Program-made: the position numbers and the translations under genes
Sequence record: OP617745.1
Length of the DNA: 64,000 nucleotides
Reading direction: 5' to 3' (one strand)
Notes under the pieces: model-generated
The model's database searches: none
What the model saw: the letters and a program-made list of their open reading frames with translations, nothing else
Told to the model about the DNA's origin: nothing
Shown: positions 8,412 to 26,213 of the stretch, one piece after another
How the letters are laid out: each line of letters begins with the position of its first letter
Numbering within the stretch: the stretch's first letter is position 1

Positions 8412-8459
8412 AAGTCAGAAAAATGACGTTTGCCCACAGGGTGCGGAGGAACATCTATT
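8412..8459 (+). ncRNA. two-hairpin RNA motif copy
   Basis: GTCA-GAAAAA-TGAC then GCCC-ACA-GGGT GCGGAGGAACATCTATT. Confidence 0.55.
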
Positions 8460-8463
8460 AAAT

Positions 8464-8482
8464 GAGAATGATAATCATTTAC
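8464..8482. promoter_or_regulatory. Fur box at the centre of the convergent cassette
   Basis: GAGAATGATAATCATTTAC, 16/19 to consensus. Confidence 0.7.
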
Positions 8483-8489
8483 AATATTG

Positions 8490-8533
8490 AATAGATTTCC
8501 GCACCCTGTGGGTTAAGGAATTTCGCTTCCATG
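8490..8533 (-). ncRNA. two-hairpin RNA motif copy
   Basis: Reverse complement: GGAA-GCGAAA-TTCC, ACCC-ACA-GGGT GCGGAAATCTATT. Confidence 0.55.
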
Positions 8534-8539
8534 TAAAAC

Positions 8540-8567
8540 ATTATACAGTACTGGAATATTATGTCAA
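8540..8567 (-). promoter_or_regulatory. sigma70 promoter, right arm of the inverted repeat
   Basis: Reverse complement TTGACA-16-TATAAT. Confidence 0.8.
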
Positions 8568-8632
8568 TAGATTTTTTATCTGAACAAATTATTTTTTTGT
8601 TATATAATTACATATAAAAAAGGATTAAATTT

Positions 8633-9160
8633 ATGGTATGGAAAACACTTAAAGAAAATGATTTATATGAAATAGATGAATATGGAAATATTAGAAATAA
8701 ATCAACTATGCTAATAAGGAAAACTTCATTAAATGAGAATGGATATAAACAAATTATATTATCGTACAAAGGGAAAATATCTACTTATAAAATACATAGA
8801 TTAGTAGCAAATAATTTCCTTGCTCCACCAACAAAAGAGCAATTAGAATGGGCTAAAACTACAAAATATAAAGTTGTTCAAGTAAATCATAAGGATGGAA
8901 ACAAATTAAACAATCATAAAGACAATTTAGAATGGAATACTAATAGTGAAAACATGATTCATTCTTTTAAAAATCTTAATAGATTTAGACCAGGAAAAGG
9001 AAGTTCAAATATTAATAGTAAGCTTACAAAAGAAAATGAAAAATTTATATTGACTAATTATAAAAAGCGTGATAAGAAATATGGATTAGAAGCATTGGCG
9101 AGACAATTTAATGTTAGTGCAACAACTATTGCAAGATGCATTAATAATAATAAAAAATAA
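8633..9160 (+). CDS. NUMOD4/HNH homing endonuclease
   Basis: WKTLKENDLYEIDEYGNIRN (NUMOD4); HRLVANNFL...VNHKDGNKLNNHKDNLEW (HNH). Confidence 0.9.
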   Translation: MVWKTLKENDLYEIDEYGNIRNKSTMLIRKTSLNENGYKQIILSYKGKISTYKIHRLVANNFLAPPTKEQLEWAKTTKYKVVQVNHKDGNKLNNHKDNLEWNTNSENMIHSFKNLNRFRPGKGSSNINSKLTKENEKFILTNYKKRDKKYGLEALARQFNVSATTIARCINNNKK

Positions 9161-9163
9161 TAT

Positions 9164-9192
9164 TTGACAAGATTATTCAGTACTGCTATTAT
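9164..9192 (+). promoter_or_regulatory. early sigma70 promoter, representative of more than 25 similar promoters in 9-27 kb
   Basis: TTGACA-agattattcAGTACTGc-TATTAT. Confidence 0.85.
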
Positions 9193-9213
9193 ATATTCAT
9201 ACCAAACAGCAAA

Positions 9214-9233
9214 GGGAATCAGTACTGATTCCC
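9214..9233. repeat. 20-bp palindrome GGGAATCAGTACTGATTCCC used as a leader hairpin (copies at 10124, 10539, 16649, 18974; variants at 9727, 14597, 20238)
   Basis: Direct sequence comparison; lies between promoter and AAGGAG SD in all copies except 9727. Confidence 0.9.
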
Positions 9234-9250
9234 TGTAAAGGAGAACTACC

Positions 9251-9421
9251 ATGAAATACGCATACTCTTATTTTATTGTAAACGGTGAACGTTTGACCAT
9301 CGGCCAGGCTGCTGTAAAACATGAAATCATTTGCGATGAGCTGGCGAAGATGCTACCAGGTGAAACGCAAGAGTTTTACAAAGGCTTTCAGAAAGTCACT
9401 GTAACACGCTGCGAAGATTGA
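9251..9421 (+). CDS. small early protein (56 aa)
   Basis: Manual ORF with its own promoter and AAGGAG SD. Confidence 0.75.
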   Translation: MKYAYSYFIVNGERLTIGQAAVKHEIICDELAKMLPGETQEFYKGFQKVTVTRCED

Positions 9422-9486
9422 TCCAGTACTGGGGCAGCAATGCCCCTTTAAACGTCCTGTAACGCATTGTAAGAGGTTTTTATAAT

Positions 9487-9714
9487 ATGGCTATAGAAGT
9501 TAACGCTGGGGATATAAAGGCGGCTGTACTGCGTACCCTGAAAGCATACGGCAGAAAGCTGAATGATCGCAACGTTCCCTATTATTTCCTTGCTGCTACT
9601 CATAAAATGGCAATCGCTGAGGCTCGCGGCTGGCTGAATGATCGCAGTACTGTAAAGAGTACCAGAACAAGAAACGCAATTGAGCGATGGATAAAAGAAT
9701 TAAATCATTTCTAA
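9487..9714 (+). CDS. hypothetical early protein
   Basis: ORF track. Confidence 0.75.
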   Translation: MAIEVNAGDIKAAVLRTLKAYGRKLNDRNVPYYFLAATHKMAIAEARGWLNDRSTVKSTRTRNAIERWIKELNHF

Positions 9715-9787
9715 TAGTTCAGTTAAGGGATTCAGTACTGATTCCCTGTTCAGTACTGAAATTATAAGGGGAGTTAATTAATTCCCC

Positions 9788-9802
9788 TTTACAAATCTTT
9801 AC
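9788..9802. promoter_or_regulatory. CpxR-like box (TTTAC-N5-TTTAC)
   Basis: Reverse complement GTAAAGATTTGTAAA, 10 nt upstream of the -35 at 9813. Confidence 0.55.
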
Positions 9803-9812
9803 AAAAGAATGG

Positions 9813-9895
9813 TTGACATAGTATTTCAGTACTGGTATTATGTATTCATAGACAGAACAAGTCTTTGACCCACCGGGTGCGGAGGAGTATCTATT
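9813..9895 (+). ncRNA. promoter plus two-hairpin RNA motif copy
   Basis: TTGACA-17-TATTAT; AGAC-AGAACAA-GTCT; ACCC-ACC-GGGT GCGGAGGAGTATCTATT. Confidence 0.55.
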
Positions 9896-9904
9896 AGATT
9901 GAAT

Positions 9905-9923
9905 GAGAATGATAATGATTCTC
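9905..9923. promoter_or_regulatory. Fur box
   Basis: GAGAATGATAATGATTCTC, identical to 8119-8137. Confidence 0.7.
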
Positions 9924-10161
9924 ATTTACTGTACTGAATATATTCCAGCACCCTTTTTGGGCTTTTCGATTTCTCTCTACTTGTTAATAAGTATACCATA
10001 ATCAGTACTGAATGCAATGCTCTTTACAAATCTTTACAAAAGAAAATAATTATAAAAAGTACTGAAAAAGTATTTGACGTAATAATGTAGTACTGGCATA
10101 ATACATCCATACCAAACAACAAAGGGAATCAGTACTGATTCCCTGTTAAGGAGTAACTAAA

Positions 10162-10449
10162 ATGTTTAATGCTAATGATCATATTGTTAAAGAGTTTTCT
10201 TTCAGTAAGCCGGTGCATTTAGAAAACGGTGAAACGCTGGACAATAAATTTTATGGTAGTATTATTAAGCGTTATACATCGCGTAGCAGTACTGGAATTT
10301 TGTGGGAAGTGAATAAACAGTACAATGGTAATTCGCTGGTTGTCAATGAGTGGGAAAGTTATGCAGTAGCTGAAATGGATTTTTCTAACTTCATTACTGA
10401 ATCTTTGAACGATGATATTTTTTACAAGTTCACAGCGGAAAGGGTTTAA
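10162..10449 (+). CDS. hypothetical early protein
   Basis: Own promoter, leader palindrome, SD. Confidence 0.8.
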   Translation: MFNANDHIVKEFSFSKPVHLENGETLDNKFYGSIIKRYTSRSSTGILWEVNKQYNGNSLVVNEWESYAVAEMDFSNFITESLNDDIFYKFTAERV

Positions 10450-10576
10450 AAAGTTTTAAAGAGTATTTGACAACATAAACCAGTACTGTATAATGTATTG
10501 CATAGGGCGGCACAAGTCGCCCACAACTAACCAGCAAAGGGAATCAGTACTGATTCCCTGTTAAGGAGTAATTACT

Positions 10577-11188
10577 ATGAATGTTATCGATACTATCTAT
10601 TCTAAATCTTTTGATGAATTGGATTCAGTACAGAAGAAAAAAGCAATTGATATTATGCGGGATCTGGAACGCCACGATTCAGATCCATTCTGGGCACAAT
10701 TAATTAATGAAGATAAACGCGAATTAATGAATAATGAATATGGTTTTACTGATACTGTAATTCATTATAGCGGCTTTTGCTCACAAGGTGACGGGGCGTC
10801 AATTAGTACTGAATCAATCGCCGCCGAGACGTTTTTACGCAAAATTAAAGCATGGTCGAAATTCCGTGTATTGCATAAACATTTCAATGATGGTACAATT
10901 ACATTAAAGATCGAACGCAACGATCATCGTTATTCTCATGAAAATACTGTTTCTGGTGTGGTGGATCTGGACTACGGCACTGAATTCACTGCTAAACAGG
11001 AAGAGAAAGCGGACGAACTGGAAACGCTTTTGACTGAAACTATCCGCGATCTTTCTCGCCAGCATTATCAGGTTCTGAGCGATGAAAACGATTATCAAAA
11101 TAGTGATGAAGCATTGATTGAATCGATTAATGCAAATGATTATAATTTCAAAGTTAATAGTACTGGCGACGTGTTAGGACTTGCATAA
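10577..11188 (+). CDS. conserved phage protein of unknown function (SGFxSQGDGA motif)
   Basis: HYSGFCSQGDGAS and C-terminal SDEALIESINANDYNF, recalled as a recurrent phage family. Confidence 0.75.
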   Translation: MNVIDTIYSKSFDELDSVQKKKAIDIMRDLERHDSDPFWAQLINEDKRELMNNEYGFTDTVIHYSGFCSQGDGASISTESIAAETFLRKIKAWSKFRVLHKHFNDGTITLKIERNDHRYSHENTVSGVVDLDYGTEFTAKQEEKADELETLLTETIRDLSRQHYQVLSDENDYQNSDEALIESINANDYNFKVNSTGDVLGLA

Positions 11189-11278
11189 TGACCAAATTAT
11201 ATATTCGTTTCTGTTTTGCCTGGTACTTGTATAATCTGCAAAATGGTTATACAGTGAAATAATGAACTGATATACTGT

Positions 11279-11373
11279 AAAACGTCCTGTAAACGATTAT
11301 GGGACGTTTTAAGGAATATTGGTACAATGGTTAGTACTGAATGATTTAAACGCCTTACAATCGCTTACAGGGG
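11279..11373. repeat. bipartite AAAACGTCCTGTAA... element (near-identical 40 nt at 19499; relatives at 9449, 13064, 14341, 15449, 23762, 27200)
   Basis: aaaacgtcctgtaa(a/t)cgattatgggacgttttaaggaata, 39/40 identical. Confidence 0.75.
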
Positions 11374-11382
11374 ATTATATCA

Positions 11383-11613
11383 ATGACTATTATCGCAAAA
11401 TCCAAAATCAACAATACTACAGTAAAACTTGTACAATTGAAAAACTGTTTTAAAGTTTCCTATTGTGGTTTTAAGCGTGAATTTAGTACTATCGAAAAGG
11501 CGGCAGAACATTACAGCAGTACTGTAAAATCTTTTGTTGATAATGATTCTCGTAACCTTGTTAGTGATTATAATCGTTTTAATTCAATTCAGGAACAATT
11601 AAAAGATCTGTAA
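11383..11613 (+). CDS. hypothetical early protein
   Basis: ORF track. Confidence 0.75.
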   Translation: MTIIAKSKINNTTVKLVQLKNCFKVSYCGFKREFSTIEKAAEHYSSTVKSFVDNDSRNLVSDYNRFNSIQEQLKDL

Positions 11614-11678
11614 AAAGTACTTGCTTTAATCTTTCAGTACTGTTATAATAACTACATCAACCACAAAGGAGTAACCAA

Positions 11679-11993
11679 ATGAGTACTAAAGAACTGAATG
11701 TAACTACCAACACTTATAAGACGTTAGGCGGTCGGTTGTTACGTGATTATTACGCGATTGAGATCGAAGAACGCGAATTACCCGAAGATAAACACTATTG
11801 GGAAAGTGGTGTGAGTCCTCTGTTACGGGTAACAACGTCAAAGCATGTTTTCTTTACTTCCCGCATTCATGTTAATAAGCGTGTTGAATTGACTTTCTCT
11901 TTCAGTGGTAGTTATAAAGATCATGAGATCTTGAATGATCGTATCGTTATTAATAAATTTATTCAAATGTATGGTGTAGATTCTTTCGCATAA
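11679..11993 (+). CDS. hypothetical early protein
   Basis: Own promoter, AAGGAG SD. Confidence 0.8.
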   Translation: MSTKELNVTTNTYKTLGGRLLRDYYAIEIEERELPEDKHYWESGVSPLLRVTTSKHVFFTSRIHVNKRVELTFSFSGSYKDHEILNDRIVINKFIQMYGVDSFA

Positions 11994-12056
11994 GTATTTG
12001 ACAATGCGATCCAGTACTGTATAATGTATTTCATCGAATAGATAGGAGTACTTACC

Positions 12057-12362
12057 ATGCTAACTTGGAATAAATCCAGTGTTTTAAAAGTGCAAAAAGT
12101 ACTGAATAATGATTATGGTGATATTTTAATCAGTACTGTAAACTTAACTGATACATTTATTAAAAATGTAAAAGCTGGGAATGATCTCCGGCAAGAATAT
12201 TTGAACGCAGTTCAAACTATTCTACATATTCCAGAACAATTGGTTTATTTTGTTCGTACTCTTTCACAATCAAAAATTATGATCCGTTTTAAAGAAGTAC
12301 CAGAATTCAGATCATTAGTTGCTTTTTATGAAATTTTGGTAAAACAAGCAAGATGTTTATAA
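12057..12362 (+). CDS. hypothetical early protein
   Basis: Own promoter, AGGAG SD. Confidence 0.8.
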   Translation: MLTWNKSSVLKVQKVLNNDYGDILISTVNLTDTFIKNVKAGNDLRQEYLNAVQTILHIPEQLVYFVRTLSQSKIMIRFKEVPEFRSLVAFYEILVKQARCL

Positions 12363-12451
12363 AAAGTATTTGACAATGCGATCCAGTACTGTATAATGTA
12401 TTACATCAAAGGGGATACATAGTGTATCCCTGATATAAAGGAGTAGCGACT

Positions 12452-12811
12452 ATGCGAGCTTTTAACGTTTATAAGAATGACAAGAAAATTGACGTTGTTT
12501 ATTATTCCGAAGTAATGACCGCGAAAGAAGTAACCGATTTACTGAATAGCCGTGGTGAATACAACGGTGAAGTAAAAGCATTTCGGTCATTGAATAGTGC
12601 GAATATTCGCACAGTACTGAAAAATGCTAAAACTGTTTTATTCAATGATGACGAATATTTTAATAAAGATGTTACGGGTATTAAAAACCTGGAAGATCTG
12701 AAAAGCCTTATTGGTATTAAAGGCAATGTTTATAAAGTTACTGAAGTCGGATCACGCCATGAATATAAATTAGCCAATAGTGATTATAAATTTTCAATCA
12801 TTGTAATGTAA
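12452..12811 (+). CDS. hypothetical early protein
   Basis: Own promoter, leader hairpin, SD. Confidence 0.8.
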   Translation: MRAFNVYKNDKKIDVVYYSEVMTAKEVTDLLNSRGEYNGEVKAFRSLNSANIRTVLKNAKTVLFNDDEYFNKDVTGIKNLEDLKSLIGIKGNVYKVTEVGSRHEYKLANSDYKFSIIVM

Positions 12812-12907
12812 TATGAAAGTTTATAGCGTCGATGCTTACGATATTCAGGGCGATCTTTCAGTACTGAAAAATATGTTGACATAGTTTTTTGTTACTGTAT
12901 AATAATT

Positions 12908-12932
12908 AGGGGATCAATCGATCCCCTTTTTT
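12908..12932 (+). terminator. intrinsic terminator directly after a promoter (12876-12903)
   Basis: AGGGGATC-AATC-GATCCCCT-TTTTT. Confidence 0.7.
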
Positions 12933-12951
12933 GTTTCAGTACTGAATTAAT

Positions 12952-13036
12952 AATAGATACACTACGGCACCCTATGGGTTAGTGCCTTGTGTCCGGCTTA
13001 TGTAGTTATTATGCCAGTACTGCGAACATAAGTCAA
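12952..13036 (-). ncRNA. promoter plus two-hairpin RNA motif copy
   Basis: Reverse complement TTGACT-17-CATAAT; GCC-GGACACAA-GGC; ACCC-ATA-GGGT GCCGTAGTGTATCTATT. Confidence 0.55.
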
Positions 13037-13046
13037 TAGATGATTT

Positions 13047-13061
13047 GTAAAGAAGTGTAAA
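13047..13061. promoter_or_regulatory. CpxR-like box
   Basis: GTAAA-GAAGT-GTAAA, 10 nt upstream of the minus-strand -35. Confidence 0.55.
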
Positions 13062-13494
13062 TGCACAGGAAGCGTTTTAAGGCGTTAATCTGTTGCTGGT
13101 GGCTGATAGTACAGAGAAGTGTTTTAGATTGATTGTAGGCTGTTGTAGGCGTTTATAGATAGTAAAGTACTGATAATGTTTAATGATCCAAGTATGTGCA
13201 AATTATTTTAATTTTTTTCGTATTGGGTATTGACGGATTATGTCAGTACTGGCATAATGTATCACATGAAGCGGCGAGATGGAAAGTCATCTCAGTAGCT
13301 GGCCAGTAAAGCATATGAAGTCCTGGTGTCGCCTCAAACGGTCTTAGGTATTAAATAGCACGTAACATCTAAACGTTGATGATACTGAAAACTAAAAAGA
13401 AAAAAGTAGTTGACAAGTACTAACGAGAATGAGATAATCTCACTCGTTGAAACAAACAAACAATCTTAATCAAAACTTAATGAGGATTTACAAA

Positions 13495-13995
13495 ATGGCT
13501 AAACTTAACTCTGTGATCGTTGCTCTGCTGGCTGGTGATTTCGCTGCTCTGAATACTTCTTTCGCGTCGGTATCGATGGAAGATATGAAAACTGTCCGCA
13601 ATAACTTTAACGACTTTTATTCCAAATTTAAAGCGGCAAATGAAGCGGCGGAAGCGGCTGCAAAAGAGCGTAAAGCACAGATCGAAACCGAAACTAAAGC
13701 CCTGGTAGATGCCCTGGTAACTGCTGGCCTGGATCTGGAAATGGCCGCCGAAGTCGCCAGCCAGAAAATGGCGGTGAAATATCCCGAGCTGGTCGCGAAG
13801 TCGGGAACTGGTAAAACCTGGTCGTTTGAAACGGTATTCGTTAACGTTGACGGTGAAAAACTGGAAATTGGCACCAAAGGCAACAAAGGCAGTATGAAAG
13901 CACTGGCTGCGGCACGCGAAGCAATTGCCGCCGGGCAGTACAAAGATCGTGCTGAATGGATCGCCGCTCACACCTGGACTGAAACCGAAGCGTAA
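13495..13995 (+). CDS. highly expressed early protein, tentatively H-NS-like
   Basis: SD GAGGA before ATG 13495; host-optimal codons; coiled coil then ALVDALVTAGLDLE, similar to the H-NS oligomerisation region. Confidence 0.5.
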   Translation: MAKLNSVIVALLAGDFAALNTSFASVSMEDMKTVRNNFNDFYSKFKAANEAAEAAAKERKAQIETETKALVDALVTAGLDLEMAAEVASQKMAVKYPELVAKSGTGKTWSFETVFVNVDGEKLEIGTKGNKGSMKALAAAREAIAAGQYKDRAEWIAAHTWTETEA

Positions 13996-14016
13996 TAATT
14001 CAGTACTGTAATAATT

Positions 14017-14044
14017 AGCCTCCTGTAATTAGGAGGCTTTTTAT
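14017..14044 (+). terminator. intrinsic terminator
   Basis: AGCCTCCT-GTAATT-AGGAGGCT-TTTT. Confidence 0.85.
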
Positions 14045-14135
14045 TTTGTTCAAAAAAATATTTTAATTTATTTTTTGAACGGACTTAAAAAATCGGATAT
14101 AATAATAAAGGGTGTTAATTACAGAGACCCCCATA

Positions 14136-14231
14136 GTGTTCGCTACGCTCACATAATGATCTTACTCGTTGCACTCGTAAGATCATTATCCAATCGGCCT
14201 TCGGCGATTTCTTTTTGATTTCCTACGGAAA
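14136..14231 (-). other. cluster of DNA hairpins with GNA triloops
   Basis: 13-bp stem ATAATGATCTTAC/GTAAGATCATTAT plus TTTCC-GTA-GGAAA and CC-GAA-GG on the minus strand. Confidence 0.6.
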
Positions 14232-14635
14232 CCAAACGAAACCACCAGCAAAGGCAGATCCCATTATTTGATTTAGTTAGTACTGCGATTAATTAGTAAT
14301 TCATTGCACTACATAGCAATCAATTCCTTTTGTAATAGCTCACAGGACGCAATAAGACGCGTTTAAATGACTTCCCTATGTAATGCCATTCCTTTTTAAT
14401 AAGTCCTCTTAAAACGCGTTACAGTGCGTTATACGGCGTTTAATAATACTCATCATTTCTTTTTCAAAAAGTACTTGCATTAATGATCCAGTACTGTAAT
14501 AATGTACTCACTGAAACGCAGTAAGTAAATGCAAATAAGTATTTGACAAAGTGTTGTAGTACTGGCATAATGAATACATCAAAACGAAATAGCAAAGGGA
14601 TTCAGTACTGAATCCCTGTTAAGGAGAAACACCAA

Positions 14636-15109
14636 ATGTTAAAACTTCATAAAGTACTGGATAACGCAGTTGTAACCGACTTTTTCCTGTCTCTTAACAA
14701 CGAACCGAAAACAGCGAAGGAAATTGTTTTGAGTGGTTACGTTGCCAGCAAGTCAGAGATCGCACATTTGGAAAGTGCTTTCAAGTGTGGGGATGTATTG
14801 TACAGAAAAATGCAAAATACCATTGAAGATTTGCAATATATCAATTTACGTGATATTGTAGACAACAAATTAGATATTTCGGAAGAAGCACGCGAAAACC
14901 TGGTAAGTAAATTATGTTACCGTTGCCGAACTGCAAAATGGAATCGCATTCGTAGTATTATTACTTACGATTTAAGTAATATCGATTCTAAATCAATTCT
15001 TGAACGTATGTTATTAAATTTACAAAGCAATGAATGGTTTTATACTGCTGCTCAATCTCATAGCGAAGAAATTGCATATATTCGTGATTATGTAATTTAC
15101 AGCAAGTAA
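14636..15109 (+). CDS. hypothetical early protein
   Basis: Own promoter, leader palindrome, SD. Confidence 0.8.
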   Translation: MLKLHKVLDNAVVTDFFLSLNNEPKTAKEIVLSGYVASKSEIAHLESAFKCGDVLYRKMQNTIEDLQYINLRDIVDNKLDISEEARENLVSKLCYRCRTAKWNRIRSIITYDLSNIDSKSILERMLLNLQSNEWFYTAAQSHSEEIAYIRDYVIYSK

Positions 15110-15182
15110 TTAATAATTGATTAGCCATCAATAAAGCTGGTGGCTAACAGAATATTAATAACCTGTTAGGAGAATAATCTAA

Positions 15183-15452
15183 ATGAAAGGTATTAGTACT
15201 ATAATTGATGCAAATACCCGCGTAGCTCGTTCAATGGTTGCTACGTCATTACGTGAATATACTGCAAGCGGGTATTTAGTATTCGCCGTAAATGGCAAAT
15301 TGCAAGAACGTAGAATAGCATTCAGTACTAAAGAAAATTGCCGTTATATTGTATTCAAGAAAGAAGCATACAAGATAGATTTACCAGCGAAACCGATCTC
15401 CGGTGGTTACAATGTTGAAAGTCTATATGAAAGGCCGCCATATACTGCATAG
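15183..15452 (+). CDS. hypothetical early protein
   Basis: SD AGGAG. Confidence 0.75.
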   Translation: MKGISTIIDANTRVARSMVATSLREYTASGYLVFAVNGKLQERRIAFSTKENCRYIVFKKEAYKIDLPAKPISGGYNVESLYERPPYTA

Positions 15453-15561
15453 AATCGATTTTGAGCGGCTTTAATGAAATATAGGGTATCAGTACTGATA
15501 CCCGTTTAAAACAGTGTAGAAAGGCGTATAACGCGTTATACGCCGTAAGGGAGTGGATTCT

Positions 15562-16471: not shown

Positions 16472-16556
16472 TTGACTTCGGTCGCCCCTTTTGTTATTAT
16501 ATATTCATACCACAGAGCAAGTGGTTTAAGCCCACAGGGTGCCGAGATGTATCTAT
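16472..16556 (+). ncRNA. terminator-embedded promoter plus two-hairpin RNA motif copy
   Basis: TTGACT-17-TATTAT; ACCAC-AGAGCAA-GTGGT; GCCC-ACA-GGGT GCCGAGATGTATCTAT. Confidence 0.55.
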
Positions 16557-16687
16557 AATTTAATAATTTGAAGTACTGAAAAATAATTATAAAAGTAATT
16601 GCTTTGATTATCCAGTACTGCTATTATATATTCATACCTTAAAGCAAAGGGAATCAGTACTGATTCCCTGTATAGGAGATTATCCAA

Positions 16688-18599: not shown

Positions 18600-18705
18600 T
18601 TTACAAATCTTTACAAAACCAGTACTTGATTTAATTATTGAGTACTGGTATTATATATTCATTGGCAGATAAGCCGTGACCCACAGGGTGCCGAGATGTA
18701 TCTAT
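18600..18705 (+). ncRNA. CpxR-like box plus promoter plus two-hairpin RNA motif copy
   Basis: TTTAC-N5-TTTAC at 18600-18614; TTGATT-17-TATTAT; GGC-AGATAA-GCC; ACCC-ACA-GGGT GCCGAGATGTATCTAT. Confidence 0.55.
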
Positions 18706-18799
18706 AGTTTATTGAATTGAAGTACAGAAAAATATTTCTTGTGTAATTCATTTCTTATGATATAATAGTAATCACATAAATTAATTGGAGTGAACAAAA

Positions 18800-18913: not shown

Positions 18914-19011
18914 AAAGTACTTGCTTTAATGATCCAGTACTGTATAATGTACTTATACCCAAATAACAGCAAAGGGAATCAGTACTGATTCCCTGTAAAG
19001 GAGTAAAACCA

Positions 19012-19329
19012 ATGAAAGATGTAACTTTACCAGTAGTTCAAACTAACTTTGAAAACCAATTCCTGGCCGAAGTGTTCAAGATTGATAACGGTGTTGTATC
19101 AATCAATTATGGTTTCAATAGCGGCGGTTATGAAAAATTCATTTATTTCGTTACTGCCGATGGTGGATGCCTGGCAATTGATACGGTACTGAATGAATTC
19201 AGTAAAGTAGATTTTAATGATGATAATGATCCTCAGTGGTATATTGTCGGCTATGACGTGAACTATGAAGATGAAGATCTTTATGATGATCATACTAATC
19301 AAAAAATTGAATCCGCTTATGGGGAATAA
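19012..19329 (+). CDS. conserved acidic phage protein of unknown function
   Basis: GGYEKFIYFVTADGGCL...QWYIVGYDVNYEDEDLYDDH...IESAY. Confidence 0.8.
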   Translation: MKDVTLPVVQTNFENQFLAEVFKIDNGVVSINYGFNSGGYEKFIYFVTADGGCLAIDTVLNEFSKVDFNDDNDPQWYIVGYDVNYEDEDLYDDHTNQKIESAYGE

Positions 19330-19639
19330 AAATGATCATCGTACTATCAGAGAAAGAAAAGAAATTAATTCTTTCAGTACTGAAAGAATATCCCAGAAAT
19401 ATGCGGGAGCCGTTTGAAACAAATGGTGAATTCGAAGAGCATTTAAACGATATCGATTTATTGATATCCAAGATTGAATCACAATAGTGATGTACTGTAA
19501 AACGTCCTGTAATCGATTATGGGACGTTTTAAGGAATAGCACTATGATTTATTCAGTACTGTGAAAAAACGCTTGTAAATTGATTCCAGTACTGTATAAT
19601 GTACTCATATCAAACAACGAACACTTTTAAGGAAATGCA

Positions 19640-19843
19640 ATGAAAACTTTCACTGTTATTATTCAAGATTGTTTAGATACTGTAGTTTACGATAATATCA
19701 TCGCAGATAGTCCGAAACGTGCTTTTGAAAAAGCATGTTTAGAATATGCTGGCTGCGGATCCGACGGCGAGCCGTGGAATGATTATGCTTGCGTAGCAGT
19801 GTTTGAAGGTAATCATTCTAATTTGTACCGCGACGCTATGTAA
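19640..19843 (+). CDS. hypothetical early protein
   Basis: Own promoter, SD. Confidence 0.75.
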   Translation: MKTFTVIIQDCLDTVVYDNIIADSPKRAFEKACLEYAGCGSDGEPWNDYACVAVFEGNHSNLYRDAM

Positions 19844-19948
19844 TTATTTCAAGTACTATCAATATGTTGTTGACTTATGTTGGTAGTACTTTATAATAAC
19901 TTATATAGCGAATGAAAATTATTCTCCCCATTATTAGGAGTAAAGAAT

Positions 19949-20176
19949 ATGTTTTATCTTGGAACTGTTAAAGAAAATTCGAATGTAATTGAAGCATCAT
20001 TGATTTGTACTAATAATGAAGTCGCTGGCTATGATTTTGCACAAGAGCGATTCATGAAACATTATACCGGTGATGATTCAGTGTCATTTGATTTTGAACG
20101 TATCGGTGATGGTGTTACAATTATGAAATTTGAAGATCTCCCTGAAATCGATTTTGATTTTGTCGTTACACTGTAA
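19949..20176 (+). CDS. hypothetical early protein
   Basis: Own promoter, SD. Confidence 0.75.
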   Translation: MFYLGTVKENSNVIEASLICTNNEVAGYDFAQERFMKHYTGDDSVSFDFERIGDGVTIMKFEDLPEIDFDFVVTL

Positions 20177-20275
20177 AAAAAGTACTTGCATAATTCTTTC
20201 AGTACTGTATACTGTACTTATACCAAACAAAAGCAAAGGGAATCAATACTGATTCCCTGTAAAGGAGATAGGCCA

Positions 20276-20527
20276 ATGTCAGATCGTATCACTCGCAAAA
20301 TGGTAGCAGATAAAGTTGCTGGGCTGAATCTTGCTATTGACCGTCGTGGATTGCCTGAAAAATATCAGGCAGTACTGGAAGATGGTAAATTCAATATTGA
20401 ATTACAGCCGTCTCATGTTTATACTAAACCAACGACAGTACAAGGGAATTTAAGTACACGTGAAGCATATCTTTACCTCAAAGGTATGTTTGAGATCCTT
20501 CTCAATAATGTACCATATAAAGATTAA
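20276..20527 (+). CDS. hypothetical early protein
   Basis: SD AAGGAG before ATG 20276. Confidence 0.75.
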   Translation: MSDRITRKMVADKVAGLNLAIDRRGLPEKYQAVLEDGKFNIELQPSHVYTKPTTVQGNLSTREAYLYLKGMFEILLNNVPYKD

Positions 20528-20529
20528 AG

Positions 20530-20560
20530 AAAAAGGGGAGACAATGAGTCTCCCTTTTTT
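20530..20560. terminator. bidirectional intrinsic terminator
   Basis: A-tract GGGAGAC-AATGA-GTCTCCC T-tract. Confidence 0.8.
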
Positions 20561-20581
20561 GTATTCAGTACTAATATATTT

Positions 20582-20663
20582 TAGATACAATTTGGCACCC
20601 TGTGGGTTAGTAGCTTGTTCTGCTTTATGTAGTAATTATATGATAAAGCTGGTGGCTTGTCAA
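20582..20663 (-). ncRNA. promoter plus two-hairpin RNA motif copy (discrete sRNA of about 100 nt)
   Basis: Reverse complement TTGACA-17-TATAAT; AGC-AGAACAA-GCT; ACCC-ACA-GGGT GCC; runs into the terminator at 20530-20560. Confidence 0.6.
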
Positions 20664-20755
20664 CACTTATTTTAAAATAAAAAAGTACTGAATAGTACTT
20701 GCAAAAAGTATTCAGTACTGTATAATGTTTATATTGAGATTAAGGAGTACTGACT

Positions 20756-21295
20756 ATGTTAATCAAAATGTATCACGGTTCTAATAATTTTGATCACCGC
20801 CAGGGATATCTTGGTGGAAAACCTGGCAATTTTCATATGGGTTTTGGACTATATCTAACTAACTCTTATCGCTGGGCTGATAATTATGGTCGGCGTCATT
20901 ATGAGTTAGATTTAGATTTAGATCCTGCCGGTGCTGCACATAATATATGGATTCCTACTAAACACTTTATGGAATTCATAAGAGTATATTGTACTAAAAA
21001 GTTTTATACAATGTGCTGTAAAGAATTTAAAGATCGTGAATCTTTGAATGTAGAACGTGTCGAATTGCTTATTATGAATATGGAAAGGCACGTTACGAAA
21101 ATCGCTAAACCATTTGCCGATTTTGTCGCCGCCTGGGGTTGTACACACAGTATAGAAATATCTGGTAATTATGGTGGCGTTTGTGTCCGGCTTTATGATT
21201 TCAGTACTATAAAGAATTGCATTGTAAGCAAGGAAACGCAAGATTTTTATTATCCAGATGAATTGACAAGATATCCTCAAAAAAACTTGTATTAA
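20756..21295 (+). CDS. ADP-ribosyltransferase-like protein
   Basis: MYHGS...GFGLYLTNSYRWADNYG, resembling the H-G-S / G-x-Y-x-T / A-x-x-Y core of PARP/ART folds. Confidence 0.6.
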   Translation: MLIKMYHGSNNFDHRQGYLGGKPGNFHMGFGLYLTNSYRWADNYGRRHYELDLDLDPAGAAHNIWIPTKHFMEFIRVYCTKKFYTMCCKEFKDRESLNVERVELLIMNMERHVTKIAKPFADFVAAWGCTHSIEISGNYGGVCVRLYDFSTIKNCIVSKETQDFYYPDELTRYPQKNLY

Positions 21296-21342
21296 TGATT
21301 CAGTACTGATATAATGAATTAAATTAACATGAGGAATCTTAA

Positions 21343-21471
21343 ATGAATAACCGTCAATTGATGATCGATGCATCTCGTTTCCGTTCAAAAGAAGAAAAGA
21401 AAAGTTGCATTAAATTGGTTTTGTCAACTTTAATTATTGGATTAGTAATTGTTGCTTTTGTTTATAGTTAG
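21343..21471 (+). CDS. small single-TM peptide (42 aa)
   Basis: Manual ORF, SD GAGGA. Confidence 0.65.
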   Translation: MNNRQLMIDASRFRSKEEKKSCIKLVLSTLIIGLVIVAFVYS

Positions 21472-21555
21472 TACTTGATAACGGATTTCAGTACTGTATA
21501 ATGTTTATCAAAGGGAATGAAATATTCATTCCCGATTAATCAAAGGAGTTTTGCC

Positions 21556-21780
21556 ATGATCTATATTATCAAAGTATCCCCGACTGTAGGCAAATCAGAA
21601 GTTGTAGCCGTTATCACTTCCCTGGAAGCGAAAAATCTTCATACCCCGTTTAATGTATGGGTGGAGGATAATTTCGGCCAATTCAGTACTGCTGAATATA
21701 TCGGACAATTCGCCGTCCCGGATACTGGTAAAATCAAAGTGGATCGTATCCTGGATTTTGATAACAGTAATTACTTTTAA
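21556..21780 (+). CDS. hypothetical early protein
   Basis: SD AAGGAG before ATG 21556. Confidence 0.75.
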   Translation: MIYIIKVSPTVGKSEVVAVITSLEAKNLHTPFNVWVEDNFGQFSTAEYIGQFAVPDTGKIKVDRILDFDNSNYF

Positions 21781-21867
21781 AAACGTTTGACAACTGATTT
21801 CAGTACTGTATAATGTTTATCAAAGGGAATGAATTATTCATTCCCGATTAATCAAAGGGGTTTTATC

Positions 21868-22014
21868 ATGAAAGAGTATATCTTTGAAGTAACTTTCACT
21901 TTTGGCCCGCACCAACTGATCCGGTCTTCTGGCTACAACCGCGAACAAGCATTCAGCAACCTTCGCCGTATGTATCCCAATGTCGTGACTTGGGTAAAGT
22001 GTGAAGAAGCATAA
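21868..22014 (+). CDS. small early protein
   Basis: Promoter and leader duplicated from about 21475-21555. Confidence 0.7.
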   Translation: MKEYIFEVTFTFGPHQLIRSSGYNREQAFSNLRRMYPNVVTWVKCEEA

Positions 22015-22079
22015 AATAATTAGTCAGTACTATTGACAACGGGTGATAGTACTGCTATAATTATTTTAACTTATACGGA

Positions 22080-22331
22080 ATGGAGTTAAAACAAATGTTC
22101 AGTGTCAGCAAACAAGGCGACAAATTTCTGGTTCAATACCATCATTTTGATCTGGTATACACTCAGCCAGATTGTGTATTCAGTACTCAGGAAGGTGCCG
22201 AAAAGCACAAAAAAGCCTTGATCGAAAATAGCAACAGTGGTACATTAGATTTCATCCAACAGTACTGGAATGAATCTAAGCTGGTGGACGGTTATTCCAA
22301 CACAGTTTATTATGTAGGTATCACTGATTAA
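22080..22331 (+). CDS. hypothetical early protein
   Basis: ORF track; own promoter. Confidence 0.7.
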   Translation: MELKQMFSVSKQGDKFLVQYHHFDLVYTQPDCVFSTQEGAEKHKKALIENSNSGTLDFIQQYWNESKLVDGYSNTVYYVGITD

Positions 22332-22617
22332 TCGGAAGTACTGTTAATGTATATGCCAATTATCATACCGTTAGCAGTACTGTTAATCGCCGCCGTTATC
22401 TGCGAACAATATCATTTGTTAGGAATGTAAACTATGATTCAATGTGAATTGTCAGTACTGATCACGCTGTTCTATATGTTAGGACAAAAGAAACAATATA
22501 TTTCTGGTGATAATGCATTATTGTATCAATCATTAGACCAATGGCAACGATCTGAATTAAGCAATGCATGGGCGAAAGGCTACAACGACAGTACTGCAAA
22601 ATAATTTAAAAAAGGGG

Positions 22618-22699
22618 TTGACTTATGTCAGCCCTTTTGTTATTATTAGTACATAGCAAGAACAATGCTCAAGCCCACAGGGTGCGGAGGTGTATCTAT
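22618..22699 (+). ncRNA. terminator-embedded promoter plus two-hairpin RNA motif copy
   Basis: TTGACT-17-TATTAT; AGCA-AGAACAA-TGCT; GCCC-ACA-GGGT GCGGAGGTGTATCTAT. Confidence 0.55.
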
Positions 22700-22821
22700 A
22701 GTTTATGTTGGTCTGAATCATTAATTTTTCTTGACAATTGGTTTAGTACTGGATATAATAGCCGCCATTGAATACAGAACGGGAAATTAGTACTAATTTC
22801 CCTTACAGGAGGATTTTAAAA

Positions 22822-23088
22822 ATGGCCTATCATACACCACATAGACACTTCATTGATAAACGCGGTATGGCTTTTAAAGCAATGAGTGACAATAGTAACA
22901 CACAAATGTACTTTAAAGATATGACGTTAGAAGAAGCAATTGAAGCCGTAAGGAATGATCGTAAGCTTTCCAAGAAAGTTGCATCAGTACTTAATGCTTT
23001 TTGGTTTGAACGTACTACCAACAAAGAATACAAAGAAAAGATGATTGCACTTGGTAAAGTAGTAAGAGAAGAAAAATTATATCTTTAA
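22822..23088 (+). CDS. hypothetical early protein
   Basis: SD AGGAGG before ATG 22822. Confidence 0.75.
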   Translation: MAYHTPHRHFIDKRGMAFKAMSDNSNTQMYFKDMTLEEAIEAVRNDRKLSKKVASVLNAFWFERTTNKEYKEKMIALGKVVREEKLYL

Positions 23089-23153
23089 GTACTAGACAAT
23101 GTGATTCAGTACTGCTATTATTATTACATACCAAACGAAAGGAGATTTACCAA

Positions 23154-23261
23154 ATGAAACAAGCTAAATTTAATTCAGAAATCAAAGCTGCAAAAGCACA
23201 TAAAGTACAGTTAGTAGTACTGGCTATTGTATCAATCTTTTTGCTGTGCAACATCGGCTAA
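23154..23261 (+). CDS. small single-TM peptide (35 aa)
   Basis: Manual ORF, own promoter, AAGGAG SD. Confidence 0.65.
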   Translation: MKQAKFNSEIKAAKAHKVQLVVLAIVSIFLLCNIG

Positions 23262-23359
23262 AATAATTACTCAGTACTATTGACAATATGTGATAGTACT
23301 GATATATTAATACGCATAGGGGCAAACAACTTGCCCCACTAAACAAAAGGAACTACCAA

Positions 23360-23716
23360 ATGATTACTAAATTCTATTCTTCCCGCGAAAAAGCTCGGAT
23401 CGTAGCACGTGAAGAAGGCGAAACCTTCAAAGATATGGGTAAAGATTCCCCTGCTGGTCGACGCTGGGCAGTACTGTTCCGCGAGGTCAAAGACCTGGTA
23501 GAAAACGCTAAAGCCGTTGAAATGAACGTTCCCACCAAAGAAGATAAAGATCTGACTGATGCCCTGGCCGCTGCCTTCGCCGCTATGGATAAAGCCGCAG
23601 CGGTAGTACTAAAAGTGCCGGAATTCGTAACCCGCAAAGTGCATTCAGTACTACAAAATAAATTCAACGGTAAACAGGTTCAGGTGTTTACTAAACGTAA
23701 AATTCCGGTCATGTAA
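23360..23716 (+). CDS. hypothetical early protein
   Basis: Own promoter; FYSSREKAR...KDMG...PAGRRWAV. Confidence 0.8.
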   Translation: MITKFYSSREKARIVAREEGETFKDMGKDSPAGRRWAVLFREVKDLVENAKAVEMNVPTKEDKDLTDALAAAFAAMDKAAAVVLKVPEFVTRKVHSVLQNKFNGKQVQVFTKRKIPVM

Positions 23717-23795
23717 GACCTGATTATTACAGTACTAACAAAGGGGCTTCAAAGCCCCTTTTAAACGTCCTGTAAGCCATTATAAGAGGTTTTGC

Positions 23796-24044
23796 ATGAA
23801 AAAGGTACAACTACACAAAGGAGTAATGAAAGTTCATTATAATGCCCCGCAACGCATTATAGATAGAGCCATTGAACTAGCCAATCAATATCTAGCTGGT
23901 GGATTAACTCCCAGGAAGTTAAGCAACGGGAAGTTATATGTAATCAACGTTGATACTAATAATCGTATAGTAATCAAAGGTGAAAGCATATCACTGTATG
24001 AACATCAGCAGTATAACAAGAAAGTAAAAAATATTAGTAGATAA
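23796..24044 (+). CDS. hypothetical early protein
   Basis: ORF track. Confidence 0.7.
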   Translation: MKKVQLHKGVMKVHYNAPQRIIDRAIELANQYLAGGLTPRKLSNGKLYVINVDTNNRIVIKGESISLYEHQQYNKKVKNISR

Positions 24045-24123
24045 GTGTTGACAACTCATTTCAGTACTGCCATAATGTATACATACAAGGCAATACCGCC
24101 TAATAACATAGGAGTAACTGAAA

Positions 24124-24546
24124 ATGAAAAAATCCACTAAAATTGTCTTAGGTGTATTTGTTGTTCCGACAGTCGCCTTTTTTACTTGTGCTATGATTTT
24201 TGGTGATGCTTCTCGGGTTGCCGCAAAAATCGAAAAAGAAAAACAAGTCCAAACACAAGTTAAGAAAGAAGAAAAGAAAAATTATAACACTGTATGGGAA
24301 GCAATTTGCCATACCAGTAATGGTAAAAGGATCTCAATCCTTACAGCGATGAATAATGGAAAATCAATCGTCGGAAACGAATATATGGAAGTTACTTCCA
24401 GTACTGGTAAAGAATTTGTAATGACGAACTACAATAACAATAACGTTGCAATTGTTACACAGGATTTTAAAGGTAATGCAGTACTTGAATATCATACGGA
24501 ATATGAAGTAATATTTGCAAAATGCACGTTTGAATGGGGTGCATAA
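24124..24546 (+). CDS. membrane-anchored/exported early protein
   Basis: N-terminal KK plus hydrophobic helix. Confidence 0.75.
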   Translation: MKKSTKIVLGVFVVPTVAFFTCAMIFGDASRVAAKIEKEKQVQTQVKKEEKKNYNTVWEAICHTSNGKRISILTAMNNGKSIVGNEYMEVTSSTGKEFVMTNYNNNNVAIVTQDFKGNAVLEYHTEYEVIFAKCTFEWGA

Positions 24547-24572
24547 AAATAAAAAAAAATCAAAAAGGGGGG

Positions 24573-24649
24573 TTGACACAGGTCAGCCCCTTTGCTATCA
24601 TTAATATCAAGAAAACAAGCTAACCCACAGGGTGCATAAATGTATCTAT
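24573..24649 (+). ncRNA. terminator-embedded promoter plus RNA motif copy (hairpin 1 weak)
   Basis: TTGACA-17-TATCAT; ACCC-ACA-GGGT GCATAAATGTATCTAT. Confidence 0.5.
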
Positions 24650-24727
24650 AGTTTATTAAAGAATTTTAGTACTTGACAACGTAGTACAGCAGTACTAAAA
24701 TATCTACATACAAAGGAGATTACCAAA

Positions 24728-25312
24728 ATGAACAAACATCTTAAAGTACTGAATAAATGTAAATCCAATACCGAAATGTTACTGTACTGTTACAAAAATT
24801 TAATTAAACTCGGTAAAGGTTCATCCAGAACAGTATTTTTGTTAACAAAAAACAAAGTACTGAAAGTTGCTCATAACCATATTGGCAACCAACAGAATAC
24901 GGCGGAAATCACCGCCTGGCTGTATGTTGATTATGATCGCTATTATAATAAACGCTTTTTCGCTAAAGTGTTCCCTGATATGTCACATTTTAAAGATGTA
25001 TACATAGTACAGGAGTACTGCGACAATATCAGTACTAAAGAAGCGAAGCCATACATTGAACATTACTTGACACCTCGCACTATTGAAAATGAGCGTGCTA
25101 AACGCTTCCACACGGCGTTAAGAGATGTAGACAATACCCTTAACTATAAAACGCTGGTGGACTTAAACAAGCGTAATATAGGCCGTTCTGTAAGGGGTGC
25201 AATAAAACTCCGTGATTATGGATTATCTGAACATATTGCTAAACAGTACCGAGAAGCCCGCTTCCAATACCAGAAGCTCAAAAGTATTAGTAAAATAAGT
25301 ATTGATTTATAA
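24728..25312 (+). CDS. minimal protein-kinase-like protein
   Basis: Gly loop LGKGSSRTVF, VLKV lysine, NTAE glutamate, YIVQEY hinge, DLNKRN catalytic loop, DYG. Confidence 0.7.
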   Translation: MNKHLKVLNKCKSNTEMLLYCYKNLIKLGKGSSRTVFLLTKNKVLKVAHNHIGNQQNTAEITAWLYVDYDRYYNKRFFAKVFPDMSHFKDVYIVQEYCDNISTKEAKPYIEHYLTPRTIENERAKRFHTALRDVDNTLNYKTLVDLNKRNIGRSVRGAIKLRDYGLSEHIAKQYREARFQYQKLKSISKISIDL

Positions 25313-25377
25313 TTTCAGTACTGGTATAGTACTTTCACAGGGGAGATAATCTCCCCAATCACAGAGGAGATTTTACC

Positions 25378-25740
25378 ATGAGTACTAAACCTTTTGTTAC
25401 TACCCGTTCTAATCTGACCGAAATCTATGTACACGGTGGATATGAGGAAACGTATGTCACTGGTATTATGGTAGAATTTCATCAGGGCTTCCGGTTCATG
25501 CTGGTGAATTCAGAGATCTATCACACACAGCAAGATAAACATGGTTATGTCAATAAGTACTCATCTGATGAAGTACTGAAACGACTGGATAACAAAATTA
25601 AACAAATTCAAAAACATCTTGACAACGGCGGAAAACTTAATCATTTACTTTGGGATAGTTTAGATCCCTGCTACGGTTCTGATGCATACGGCAAAAGCCG
25701 TGACACTGCAATGAAAGTACTTAAAGATTATTTCTTTTAA
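25378..25740 (+). CDS. hypothetical early protein
   Basis: Own promoter, GAGGAG SD. Confidence 0.8.
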   Translation: MSTKPFVTTRSNLTEIYVHGGYEETYVTGIMVEFHQGFRFMLVNSEIYHTQQDKHGYVNKYSSDEVLKRLDNKIKQIQKHLDNGGKLNHLLWDSLDPCYGSDAYGKSRDTAMKVLKDYFF

Positions 25741-25831
25741 GTATTGACATAGGTTATCAGTACTGTATAATGTTTTGCATACACAAGAGATTCCAGTACT
25801 GGAATCTCTAATATAAAGGAGAATACCGAAA

Positions 25832-26113
25832 ATGATTACTGGTCACATTACTAACTATGCAAAACGCCGCGATGTAGAAATAGAAGTACTGAAAGCAGGC
25901 GAAGTTGACGATGACGCTCAGGTATGGTTCTACACGGCAGACAATGACTGTGAACCAGTACTGATGTACCTGATTAATAATGATGGTTCTCTTACTTATC
26001 GTAGCAAACTGATGAAGTCCCTGGAAGATATGCCAGCACATATCAATAATAAAGAAGTACTGAAACGCGTAATCTGCTACATCTCAGACCAGCACAAAGC
26101 GGATATGATGTAA
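25832..26113 (+). CDS. hypothetical early protein
   Basis: Own promoter; 24-bp palindromic leader AGAGATTCCAGTACTGGAATCTCT at 25786-25809. Confidence 0.8.
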   Translation: MITGHITNYAKRRDVEIEVLKAGEVDDDAQVWFYTADNDCEPVLMYLINNDGSLTYRSKLMKSLEDMPAHINNKEVLKRVICYISDQHKADMM

Positions 26114-26131
26114 TCTTTACAAATATGGGGG

Positions 26132-26213
26132 TTGACTAATGTCAGCCCTTTTGGTATTATATATTCAATCCAGCGAAATGGTCTAACCCTCAAGGGTGCC
26201 GAGATGTATCTAT
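26132..26213 (+). ncRNA. terminator-embedded promoter plus two-hairpin RNA motif copy
   Basis: TTGACT-17-TATTAT; CCA-GCGAAA-TGG; ACCC-TCAA-GGGT GCCGAGATGTATCTAT. Confidence 0.55.

Follow-up and report, generated by a model that had tools for sequence, protein, structure and literature searches.

The putL and putR sites of phage HK022 are two-hairpin elements of nascent RNA that lie close to the promoter in phage early units and contain no open reading frame (ORF). The lambdoid nut sites, made of boxA and boxB, place a small hairpin that varies in its stem but keeps a purine-rich loop beside a conserved linear segment, once per early unit. In T4-like phages, PeSL cassettes combine a repeated stem-loop with a near-consensus sigma-70 early promoter in a plastic early region (PMC2839356, PMC4122927), and the related jumbo phage PA5oct carries highly transcribed non-coding RNAs (ncRNAs) of 236-451 nt, reported without known promoters, in its direct terminal repeat (PMC7318152). 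Bacterial small RNAs (sRNAs) and decoys, such as the Hfq-type sRNAs, CsrB and 6S, have a promoter of their own, a conserved unpaired segment and high dosage. Each of these systems shares features with the element described here, a module of about 52 nt that occurs in ten full copies in a 64,000-nt stretch of the genome of Klebsiella phage KP13-7 (OP617745.1; the whole stretch is called the window below). The likeness to put and nut is one of architecture only. The element is a previously undescribed structured RNA family with solid statistical support, and the constraint observed at the RNA level together with the obligate linkage to transcription start sites makes it very probable that it functions as RNA.

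KP13-7 (genus Alcyoneusvirus, 357.7 kb) is a RaK2-like jumbo phage with RaK2, K64-1 and Muenster as close relatives. A 12-kb piece of the window was 100 % identical to its record, and record positions are obtained by adding 124000 to the window positions used throughout. The Muenster record begins at the physical left end of the genome and carries an annotated terminal repeat of 20,030 bp, which is a PhageTerm prediction. Window position 7310 aligns to position 1 of Muenster, and the left genome end of KP13-7 was placed there by homology. Toward the right repeat boundary of Muenster the alignment extends to about window position 27374, and the repeat-equivalent stretch in the window is ~7310-27460. 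All copies of the element lie within 8408-26215, inside the stretch matching the Muenster direct terminal repeat. A terminal repeat is also known from phage CBB, where its size of 22.5 kb was derived from doubled read depth and the genome size is consistent with pulsed-field gel electrophoresis (PMC5259590).

To collect the copies, we built a covariance model (CM), R1, from ten seed copies (two from the window and eight from relatives) with the two hairpins as given structure, and searched both strands of the 64 kb with filters off. R1 finds exactly ten full copies at E ≤ 4.5e-5, seven on the plus and three on the minus strand (Table 1), which are the ten listed in the initial annotation of this DNA. 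A regular-expression scan done before R1 supports the same set, and a simple pattern for the 3′ half gave 9 matches vs 0.18 expected. Apart from these copies and the sequence at 9938-9979, nothing in the window scores below E 0.4. Two further, degenerate copies had been proposed. The one at 9962 corresponds to the decayed copy at 9938-9979, which converges on the copy at 9844, but the one at 7340 is not a member of the family, as it consists of a CCC-N3-GGG hairpin only, has no promoter and lies about 20-31 nt inside the inferred left genome end. A sequence at 7672-7696, behind a promoter with a 12/12 match at 7580-7608, resembles the hairpin near 7340, and the two represent a small motif family distinct from the element. 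As had been stated, the copies encode no consistent ORF, and those ORFs that do overlap differ from copy to copy. A reading of the tail as a mini-ORF was rejected, since its start and stop are not conserved and the overlapping ORFs are inconsistent.

Beyond the window, R1 recovered 90 matches (84 distinct) at E ≤ 0.01 across 18 sources, which comprise the window itself, the early regions of Muenster, RaK2, 121Q, ph0011, GAP32, CBB, Munch and Hallingskeid, and several jumbo-phage contigs from IMG/VR. The hairpin 1 of copy 2 (GGAA/TTCC) is also present in CBB, and copy 4 is near-identical in Erwinia and Escherichia phages. When one 61-nt copy was compared by BLAST with 50,697 phage records, 54 of them matched, with Escherichia (31), Klebsiella (10), Salmonella (8), Pectobacterium (2), Cronobacter (2) and Erwinia (1) as hosts. 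Among the matches listed (40 of the 54), all are phages of 310-384 kb except one partial record of 52 kb, and the match lies inside the terminal repeat wherever such a repeat is annotated. None of the matches listed is annotated as RNA, the annotation at the site being 'none', 'hypothetical protein' or the terminal-repeat feature. Pattern scans of whole genomes gave matches confined to ~20 kb of RaK2, ~15 kb of 121Q and the two terminal-repeat copies of CBB. Between genera, megablast of a 12-kb query aligns only islands of 40-120 nt formed by promoter plus element; within the genus, promoter and element are 97 % identical vs 85-92 % for the flanks. A search of 5,426 E. coli genomes with a 64-nt copy from an E. 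coli phage gave no match. In 185,579 species genomes a 17-base pattern had 29 scattered single matches, none of them in Enterobacterales, a number that corresponds to chance level by rough estimate only. Judged by these searches, the element is specific to RaK2-like jumbo phages and confined to their terminal-repeat early region.

Searches for described families agreed with the earlier remark that the family was not a recognised one. Rfam 15 gave no match at the gathering score in the whole window, and at E ≤ 5 over 7000-27500 there were 13 weak matches, none of them on an element in its own right; the matches around 20480-20675 lie on the terminator next to copy 7 or overlap this copy on the opposite strand. 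The invariant positions fit none of what we take to be the RfaH ops site, the IHF site, the CsrA site and the sigma-dependent pause. The ncRNA001 of PA5oct, considered as a relative, had no match to R1. Our literature searches found no paper describing the element, and the CBB genome paper predicted promoters and terminators, not this element (PMC5259590).

The column shares given here come from the family alignment, with the copy at 18657-18707 as reference. From 5′ to 3′ the module consists of hairpin 1, a short linker, a CCC/GGG mini-hairpin (hairpin 2) and a conserved tail. Hairpin 1 has 3-5 bp with a free stem sequence. Its loops are A-rich and of a few types only, with A at their last two positions in ~90 % of copies. 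Against these few loop types stand 27 distinct stem types, and stems unrelated to each other carry the same loop. Each of the four pairs shows 3-5 standard pair types, with 93.5 % of the cells paired. The covariation score of hairpin 1 is 0.44 vs 0.146 in shuffles (0/500 reach 0.44), and it is ≤ 0.07 with slid partners. In an all-against-all scan of mutual information, these four pairs were the top four column pairs and nothing else was prominent; the column-pair scan found no covariation of hairpin 1 with the tail or the variable block.

In hairpin 2 the situation is different. Its CCC and GGG are invariant and enclose a loop of 3-4 nt, and the closing pair alternates between A-U (46 rows) and G-U (38 rows). 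Because CCC and GGG do not vary, covariation cannot prove this pairing. The covarying stems of the initial annotation are strongly borne out for hairpin 1 but not for hairpin 2. The G-U pairs in both hairpins imply that pairing takes place only on the sense strand, i.e. in RNA or in a displaced DNA strand. The tail begins with GGGT (100 %), G (0.98) and C (0.95); five variable positions separate these from T (0.92), G (0.71) and a block of the ATCTA type (0.81-0.89); the TG is missing in ~1/5 of the copies. A GC(C/G)GAG block had been described at this place, of which the first two letters are conserved while the rest falls into the variable positions. The conserved segment is relatively G-rich within very A+T-rich DNA.

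An alternative helix can form in which GGGTGC pairs with the tail block instead of CCC. It is 93.7 % paired, its variation is nearly all pairing-preserving (G-U to G-C, U-A to U-G), and, leaving aside the closing pair, which is often broken, 7 cells are unpaired. The two mutually exclusive hairpins have energies of -3.9 ± 0.6 vs -3.1 ± 2.8 kcal/mol and lie within 1.5 kcal/mol of each other in 46/84 sequences. Two further pairings, a helix joining the 5′ end to the tail and a pseudoknot of loop and tail, were dropped, since by eye each holds only in a subset of copies.

The linkage to promoters, also claimed initially, proved very tight. A sigma-70 match of ≥ 10/12, with the -10 ending 20-30 nt (mostly 26-28) before the CCC, was found in 90 % of the 90 family members vs 4 % of control positions with an equivalent match. 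Given this fixed distance, the RNA would start 0-3 nt before hairpin 1. Sense copies are placed after a block of early genes; 45-90 nt on comes a second promoter, with a 5′ leader and then the next gene behind it. In copies 8 and 10 a terminator hairpin called by the scan holds the -35 of the element promoter in its stem or loop, and the T-run of this terminator is the promoter spacer. The same inverted repeat was seen by eye only at copies 5 and 9 (16466-16500 and 24565-24601), and the remaining six window copies have plain promoters. The repeat region of the window has three strong minus-strand promoters, each of which drives an element and none a gene.

Antisense copies are directed back toward the end of a gene block, where they meet the bidirectional terminator of that block. 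Terminator-ended antisense copies are those at 12951-13005 and 20579-20632, with counterparts in Munch, ph0011, RaK2 and CBB. The terminator hairpin begins 51-52 nt past the CCC in four copies from KP13-7, Munch and CBB (52 nt in copy 4). Four predicted antisense RNAs of 102-123 nt fold with z of -1.8 to -3.5, a value largely owed to the terminator hairpin. In the sources with known gene direction, a terminator follows 10/16 antisense and 5/49 sense copies, and a converging partner follows 4/16 and 9/49, respectively. Bounded copies thus make up 14/16 of the antisense vs 14/49 of the sense copies (Fisher p 6e-5, with copies that are not phylogenetically independent). Convergent pairs are found ~1 kb inside the left genome end of KP13-7, CBB and Munch and recur at a greater distance from it. 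The pair at 8367-8577 has promoter arms that are identical at 33/33 positions and form a 33-nt perfect inverted repeat; its core is identical at 15/15 positions, while hairpin 1 is entirely different. In Muenster the covariance-model search found no ortholog of this first pair (copies 1 and 2).

Several other repeated sequences were noticed around the element promoters. The 10-bp repeat TCTTTACAAA, often in tandem, is found at 10021-10040, 16454-16463 and 26114-26123 besides the positions given in Table 1; 5/7 exact matches sit 8-18 bp 5′ of the -35 of element promoters, and the repeat also occurs upstream of element promoters in E. coli phages. This placement suggests a special promoter subclass. 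Palindromes resembling the E. coli Fur box (16/19) gave 4 matches vs 0.21 expected, among them 8119-8137 and the two of Table 1, which sit exactly between convergent element pairs. A similar palindrome was seen in 3/5 convergent pairs of relatives, e.g. in Munch (sequence L105) at ~1035-1060 and 7430-7450. Going by sequence, these palindromes between convergent pairs could be a host Fur site or a site for a phage protein. The palindrome AGTACT is present 276 times in the 64 kb vs 14 expected, an excess of ~20-fold (e.g. 8392-8397, 9221-9226 and 16656-16661). It is found in promoter spacers just before the -10, after ~70 % of elements and also within coding DNA, and it forms part of 20-bp palindromic hairpins between the transcription start and the ribosome-binding site (9213-9234, 10123-10144, 16648-16669 and 18973-18994). 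Several 10-bp repeats of the TATTCAGTAC type, within 7240-7345, lie just left of the inferred left genome end.

Table 1. Element copies with their promoters, terminators and intervening palindromes (window positions; CM, score against R1)
Feature	Position	Strand	Remarks
Copy 1 promoter, sigma-70	8377..8405	+	11/12 match, TG extension
Element copy 1, sense, converging with copy 2	8408..8460	+	CM 32.3 bits, E 4.5e-5; hairpin 1 GTCA/TGAC
Fur-box-like palindrome between copies 1 and 2	8464..8482	.	16/19 vs Fur box in PMC3145626
Element copy 2, antisense, short-tail variant	8485..8536	-	CM 50.1 bits; hairpin 1 GGAA/TTCC
Copy 2 promoter, sigma-70	8540..8567	-	12/12 match
Copy 3 promoter, sigma-70	9813..9841	+	TCTTTACAAA repeats just 5′ at 9786-9805
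Element copy 3, sense	9844..9896	+	CM 48.7 bits
Fur-box-like palindrome between copy 3 and decayed partner	9905..9923	.	16/19 match; palindromic stretch 9905-9929
Decayed convergent partner of copy 3	9938..9979	-	CM 17.3 bits, E 0.18, model positions 7-46
Bidirectional terminator hairpin ending antisense copy 4 RNA	12908..12927	.	Terminator scan
Element copy 4, antisense	12951..13005	-	CM 38.1 bits; predicted stand-alone RNA ~100 nt
Copy 4 promoter, sigma-70	13008..13036	-	10/12 match with TG; TCTTTACAAA at 13044-13053 (-)
Copy 5 promoter; -35 inside flanking G+C-rich inverted repeat (by eye, not scan-called)	16472..16500	+	
Element copy 5, sense	16503..16558	+	CM 44.2 bits
Copy 6 promoter, TTGATT, 17 nt, TATTAT, with TG	18626..18654	+	Sequence reading; TCTTTACAAA repeats 18598-18617
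Element copy 6, sense, top-scoring window copy	18657..18707	+	CM 66.9 bits
Bidirectional terminator hairpin ending antisense copy 7 RNA	20536..20554	.	102-nt predicted RNA folds with z -2.8
Element copy 7, antisense	20579..20632	-	CM 36 bits
Copy 7 promoter, sigma-70	20635..20663	-	12/12 match
Terminator hairpin fused with copy 8 promoter	22611..22646	+	Scan-called
Element copy 8, sense	22649..22701	+	CM 48.8 bits; second promoter 22731-22759, 12/12 match
Copy 9 promoter; -35 inside flanking G+C-rich inverted repeat (by eye, not scan-called)	24573..24601	+	
Element copy 9, sense, variant without hairpin 1	24605..24651	+	CM 46.3 bits; second promoter 24673-24701
Terminator hairpin fused with copy 10 promoter	26127..26160	+	Scan-called
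Element copy 10, sense	26163..26215	+	CM 63.8 bits

The compensatory changes in hairpin 1, the G-U pairing on the sense strand and the position of the copies at transcription starts all support the initial view that the element works as RNA. As to what this RNA does, we tentatively favour a high-dosage immediate-early RNA bound by one conserved protein partner, which would read the loop of hairpin 1 and the 3′ domain. The elements would be genes, or 5′ modules, for immediate-early ncRNAs made by the host sigma-70 RNA polymerase. The RNA itself would be the product and, wherever it ends at a terminator, an autonomous small RNA of ~100 nt. It would act in trans at high dosage, from ~10 genes per repeat with near-consensus promoters, as a ligand, decoy or scaffold for a single partner of host or phage origin, and it would be present before any phage protein is made.

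Since the antisense copies are bounded and the genes have a promoter of their own, the short RNA appears to be the product and not to make polymerase ignore terminators. Ten genes with near-consensus promoters in the repeat, an invariant 3′ domain and a differing hairpin 1 fit a high-dosage ligand of one partner. The paralogues do not differ in their 3′ domain (CCC and GGGT 100 %), and a single shared partner is also in keeping with the pair at 8367-8577, whose arms and core are identical but whose hairpins 1 are not. The antisense copies, with their intrinsic terminator and U tail, resemble bacterial sRNAs; the combination of own promoter and intrinsic terminator is found in these copies but not in most sense copies. 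Unlike in bacterial sRNAs and decoys, the dosage comes from ~10 separate genes and not from repeated sites in one RNA, and no Rfam sRNA is related in sequence. The nearest functional precedent is the ncRNAs in the terminal repeat of PA5oct, which are unrelated in sequence; they establish that highly transcribed ncRNAs exist in the terminal repeat of a distant relative (PMC7318152).

Several observations weigh against this reading. As no terminator follows most sense copies, their RNA would enter the downstream gene unless it is processed, and the position of sense copies at the heads of early blocks with a fixed start-site distance fits a role in cis equally well. The Fisher test overstates the evidence, as the copies are related by descent. 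The stem of hairpin 1 is missing in 17/90 copies, including the one at 24605, although the A-rich stretch is kept. The 52-nt module is no stabler than shuffled sequence (z 0.2 to -1.3); with such unremarkable stability the signal is evolutionary and not thermodynamic. No transcriptome of a RaK2-like phage was found in the literature, and the element RNA is predicted from sequence. We found no enriched complement of the conserved tail in the 64-kb window that could be an antisense target. No host sequence resembles the element, which is therefore not a sequence mimic. The decoy or mimic RNA suggested in the initial annotation fits the dosage and the architecture, but no host look-alike sequence was found.

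A stronger version of the high-dosage RNA, which we consider rather doubtful, is a takeover of the host that begins with RNA. Here a small RNA whose invariant domain switches between two hairpins of equal energy would act ahead of all phage proteins, seizing or re-programming a conserved host factor such as RNA polymerase or an RNA-binding protein. Some ten promoters, twenty per packaged genome, would flood the cell with this RNA within the first minute, and the convergent pairs around a Fur-type operator, ~1 kb from the entering DNA end, would tie the output to the iron status of the cell.

Of the other explanations, the one that survives best is a cis-acting element of the nascent RNA that alters elongation of its own polymerase, either by antitermination or anti-pausing, as with HK022 put and lambda nut, or as a programmed promoter-proximal pause for factor loading. 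We regard it as not very likely. In its favour, every copy lies at a transcription start, just past an early promoter as in put, and sense copies head each early gene block directly after the preceding terminator, with which copies 8 and 10 are fused. Hairpin 1, with its purine-rich loop and free stem, looks like the hairpins bound by antiterminator proteins, and the arrangement of a hairpin plus a linear part recalls phage antiterminator sites. The bacterial consensus pause has G residues at the upstream junction and a pyrimidine/G at the pause site. The invariant GG of the element and the T and G nine and ten positions further on would match these key positions, and the mini-hairpin would then sit just behind the hybrid; however, the TG in question is absent from about a fifth of the copies.

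The arrangement of the copies speaks against such a role in cis. With 14/16 antisense copies bounded by a terminator or a converging copy, an element that makes polymerase ignore terminators would be pointless or harmful there, and in contrast to put there are ~10 copies per repeat, a third of them antisense and terminator-bounded, which argues against read-through. The hairpins are also much smaller than those of put. In comparison with nut, the hairpin precedes the linear part and a separate gene promoter follows; as every block has promoters of its own downstream of the element, read-through is not needed for expression. Among 39 ORFs, Pfam recognised no antiterminator or RNA-binding family, and no N-like arginine-rich protein was found in the early ORFs (maximum 4 Arg per 18-residue window), a weak test since N proteins are poorly conserved. 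On these grounds the processive antiterminator put forward in the initial annotation is disfavoured, with no N- or Q-like protein detected.

It is distinctly unlikely, in our estimate, that the copies are mobile cassettes of terminator, promoter and leader of the PeSL type, which serve recombinational shuffling and transcriptional insulation of early ORFan genes and whose transcribed part would merely stabilise or bound the transcript. The copies do sit in a plastic early region, with small ORFs of unknown function on either side, and the islands of promoter plus element are the only stretches that align between phage genera. At least 2/10 window copies (8 and 10, by the scan) are fused terminator-promoters and, together with copies 5 and 9 (by eye), they resemble the composite terminator/promoter motifs described in PMC4122927. 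PeSLs are, however, defined by a stem-loop upstream of the promoter and have been described without a conserved transcribed module, to which the 52-nt conserved and covarying module of the element is an addition. That the RNA itself is under selection is indicated by 27 stem types with compensating changes and by a 3′ domain that does not vary across six host genera. The pair at 8367-8577, with different hairpins 1 in otherwise identical arms, is also not what simple recombinational homogenisation would produce. Finally, a transcription-primed DNA function, whether as an R-loop primer (T4 oriF/oriG, ColE1) or with the convergent pairs near the end as origin or end-protection site, is highly improbable. 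An R-loop primer had also been suggested in the initial annotation, and nothing specific supports it. In favour of this reading are the convergent promoter pairs around a palindrome near the left end in three phages and the G-richness of the conserved segment. Against it, origins would hardly be expected in ten dispersed copies within 18 kb, G is often scarce in the five variable positions that follow GGGTGC, and neither the covariation of hairpin 1 nor the terminators behind antisense copies are predicted by an R-loop.

The repeat-equivalent stretch is dense with small ORFs, all of which the KP13-7 record labels as hypothetical. Pfam recognises 6/39 ORFs, four of them above the curated cut-off (an HNH/NUMOD4 endonuclease, DUF7300, DUF7717 and a ParE-like domain); matches to an H-NS N-terminal-like domain and to a protein kinase are weak and below the cut-off. 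No tRNA or tmRNA genes were found. The ORF of the HNH/NUMOD4 homing endonuclease (8633-9160) adjoins the first convergent element pair, and that it represents a mobile insertion is only a possibility. The early ORF with the weak H-NS match (13495-13995) could be an H-NS antagonist, and another early ORF, at 23796-24044, contains the ParE-like toxin domain. In several records small 'hypothetical protein' genes are annotated over copies of the element, as in CBB (sequence L104, 3793-3966) and in Hallingskeid (10068-10229 and a gene under 5101-5140), and the same overlap is seen in WPEC3, JP4 and four SD-series Salmonella phages. These calls are probably spurious and placed on non-coding DNA.

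RaK2-like phages, which include some of the largest known for Enterobacterales, are being explored as therapy against Klebsiella and E. coli. The element adds a well-supported structured RNA family to their 20-kb terminal repeats, which are annotated almost wholly as hypothetical proteins, and corrects the annotation of the small ORFs over elements in several records. It is the best-conserved non-coding feature of the terminal-repeat region across at least six host genera. Should its RNA bind a host factor, the takeover of the host by these phages would start with RNA and not with protein; should it act in cis on polymerase, the element would represent a new class of elongation signal.

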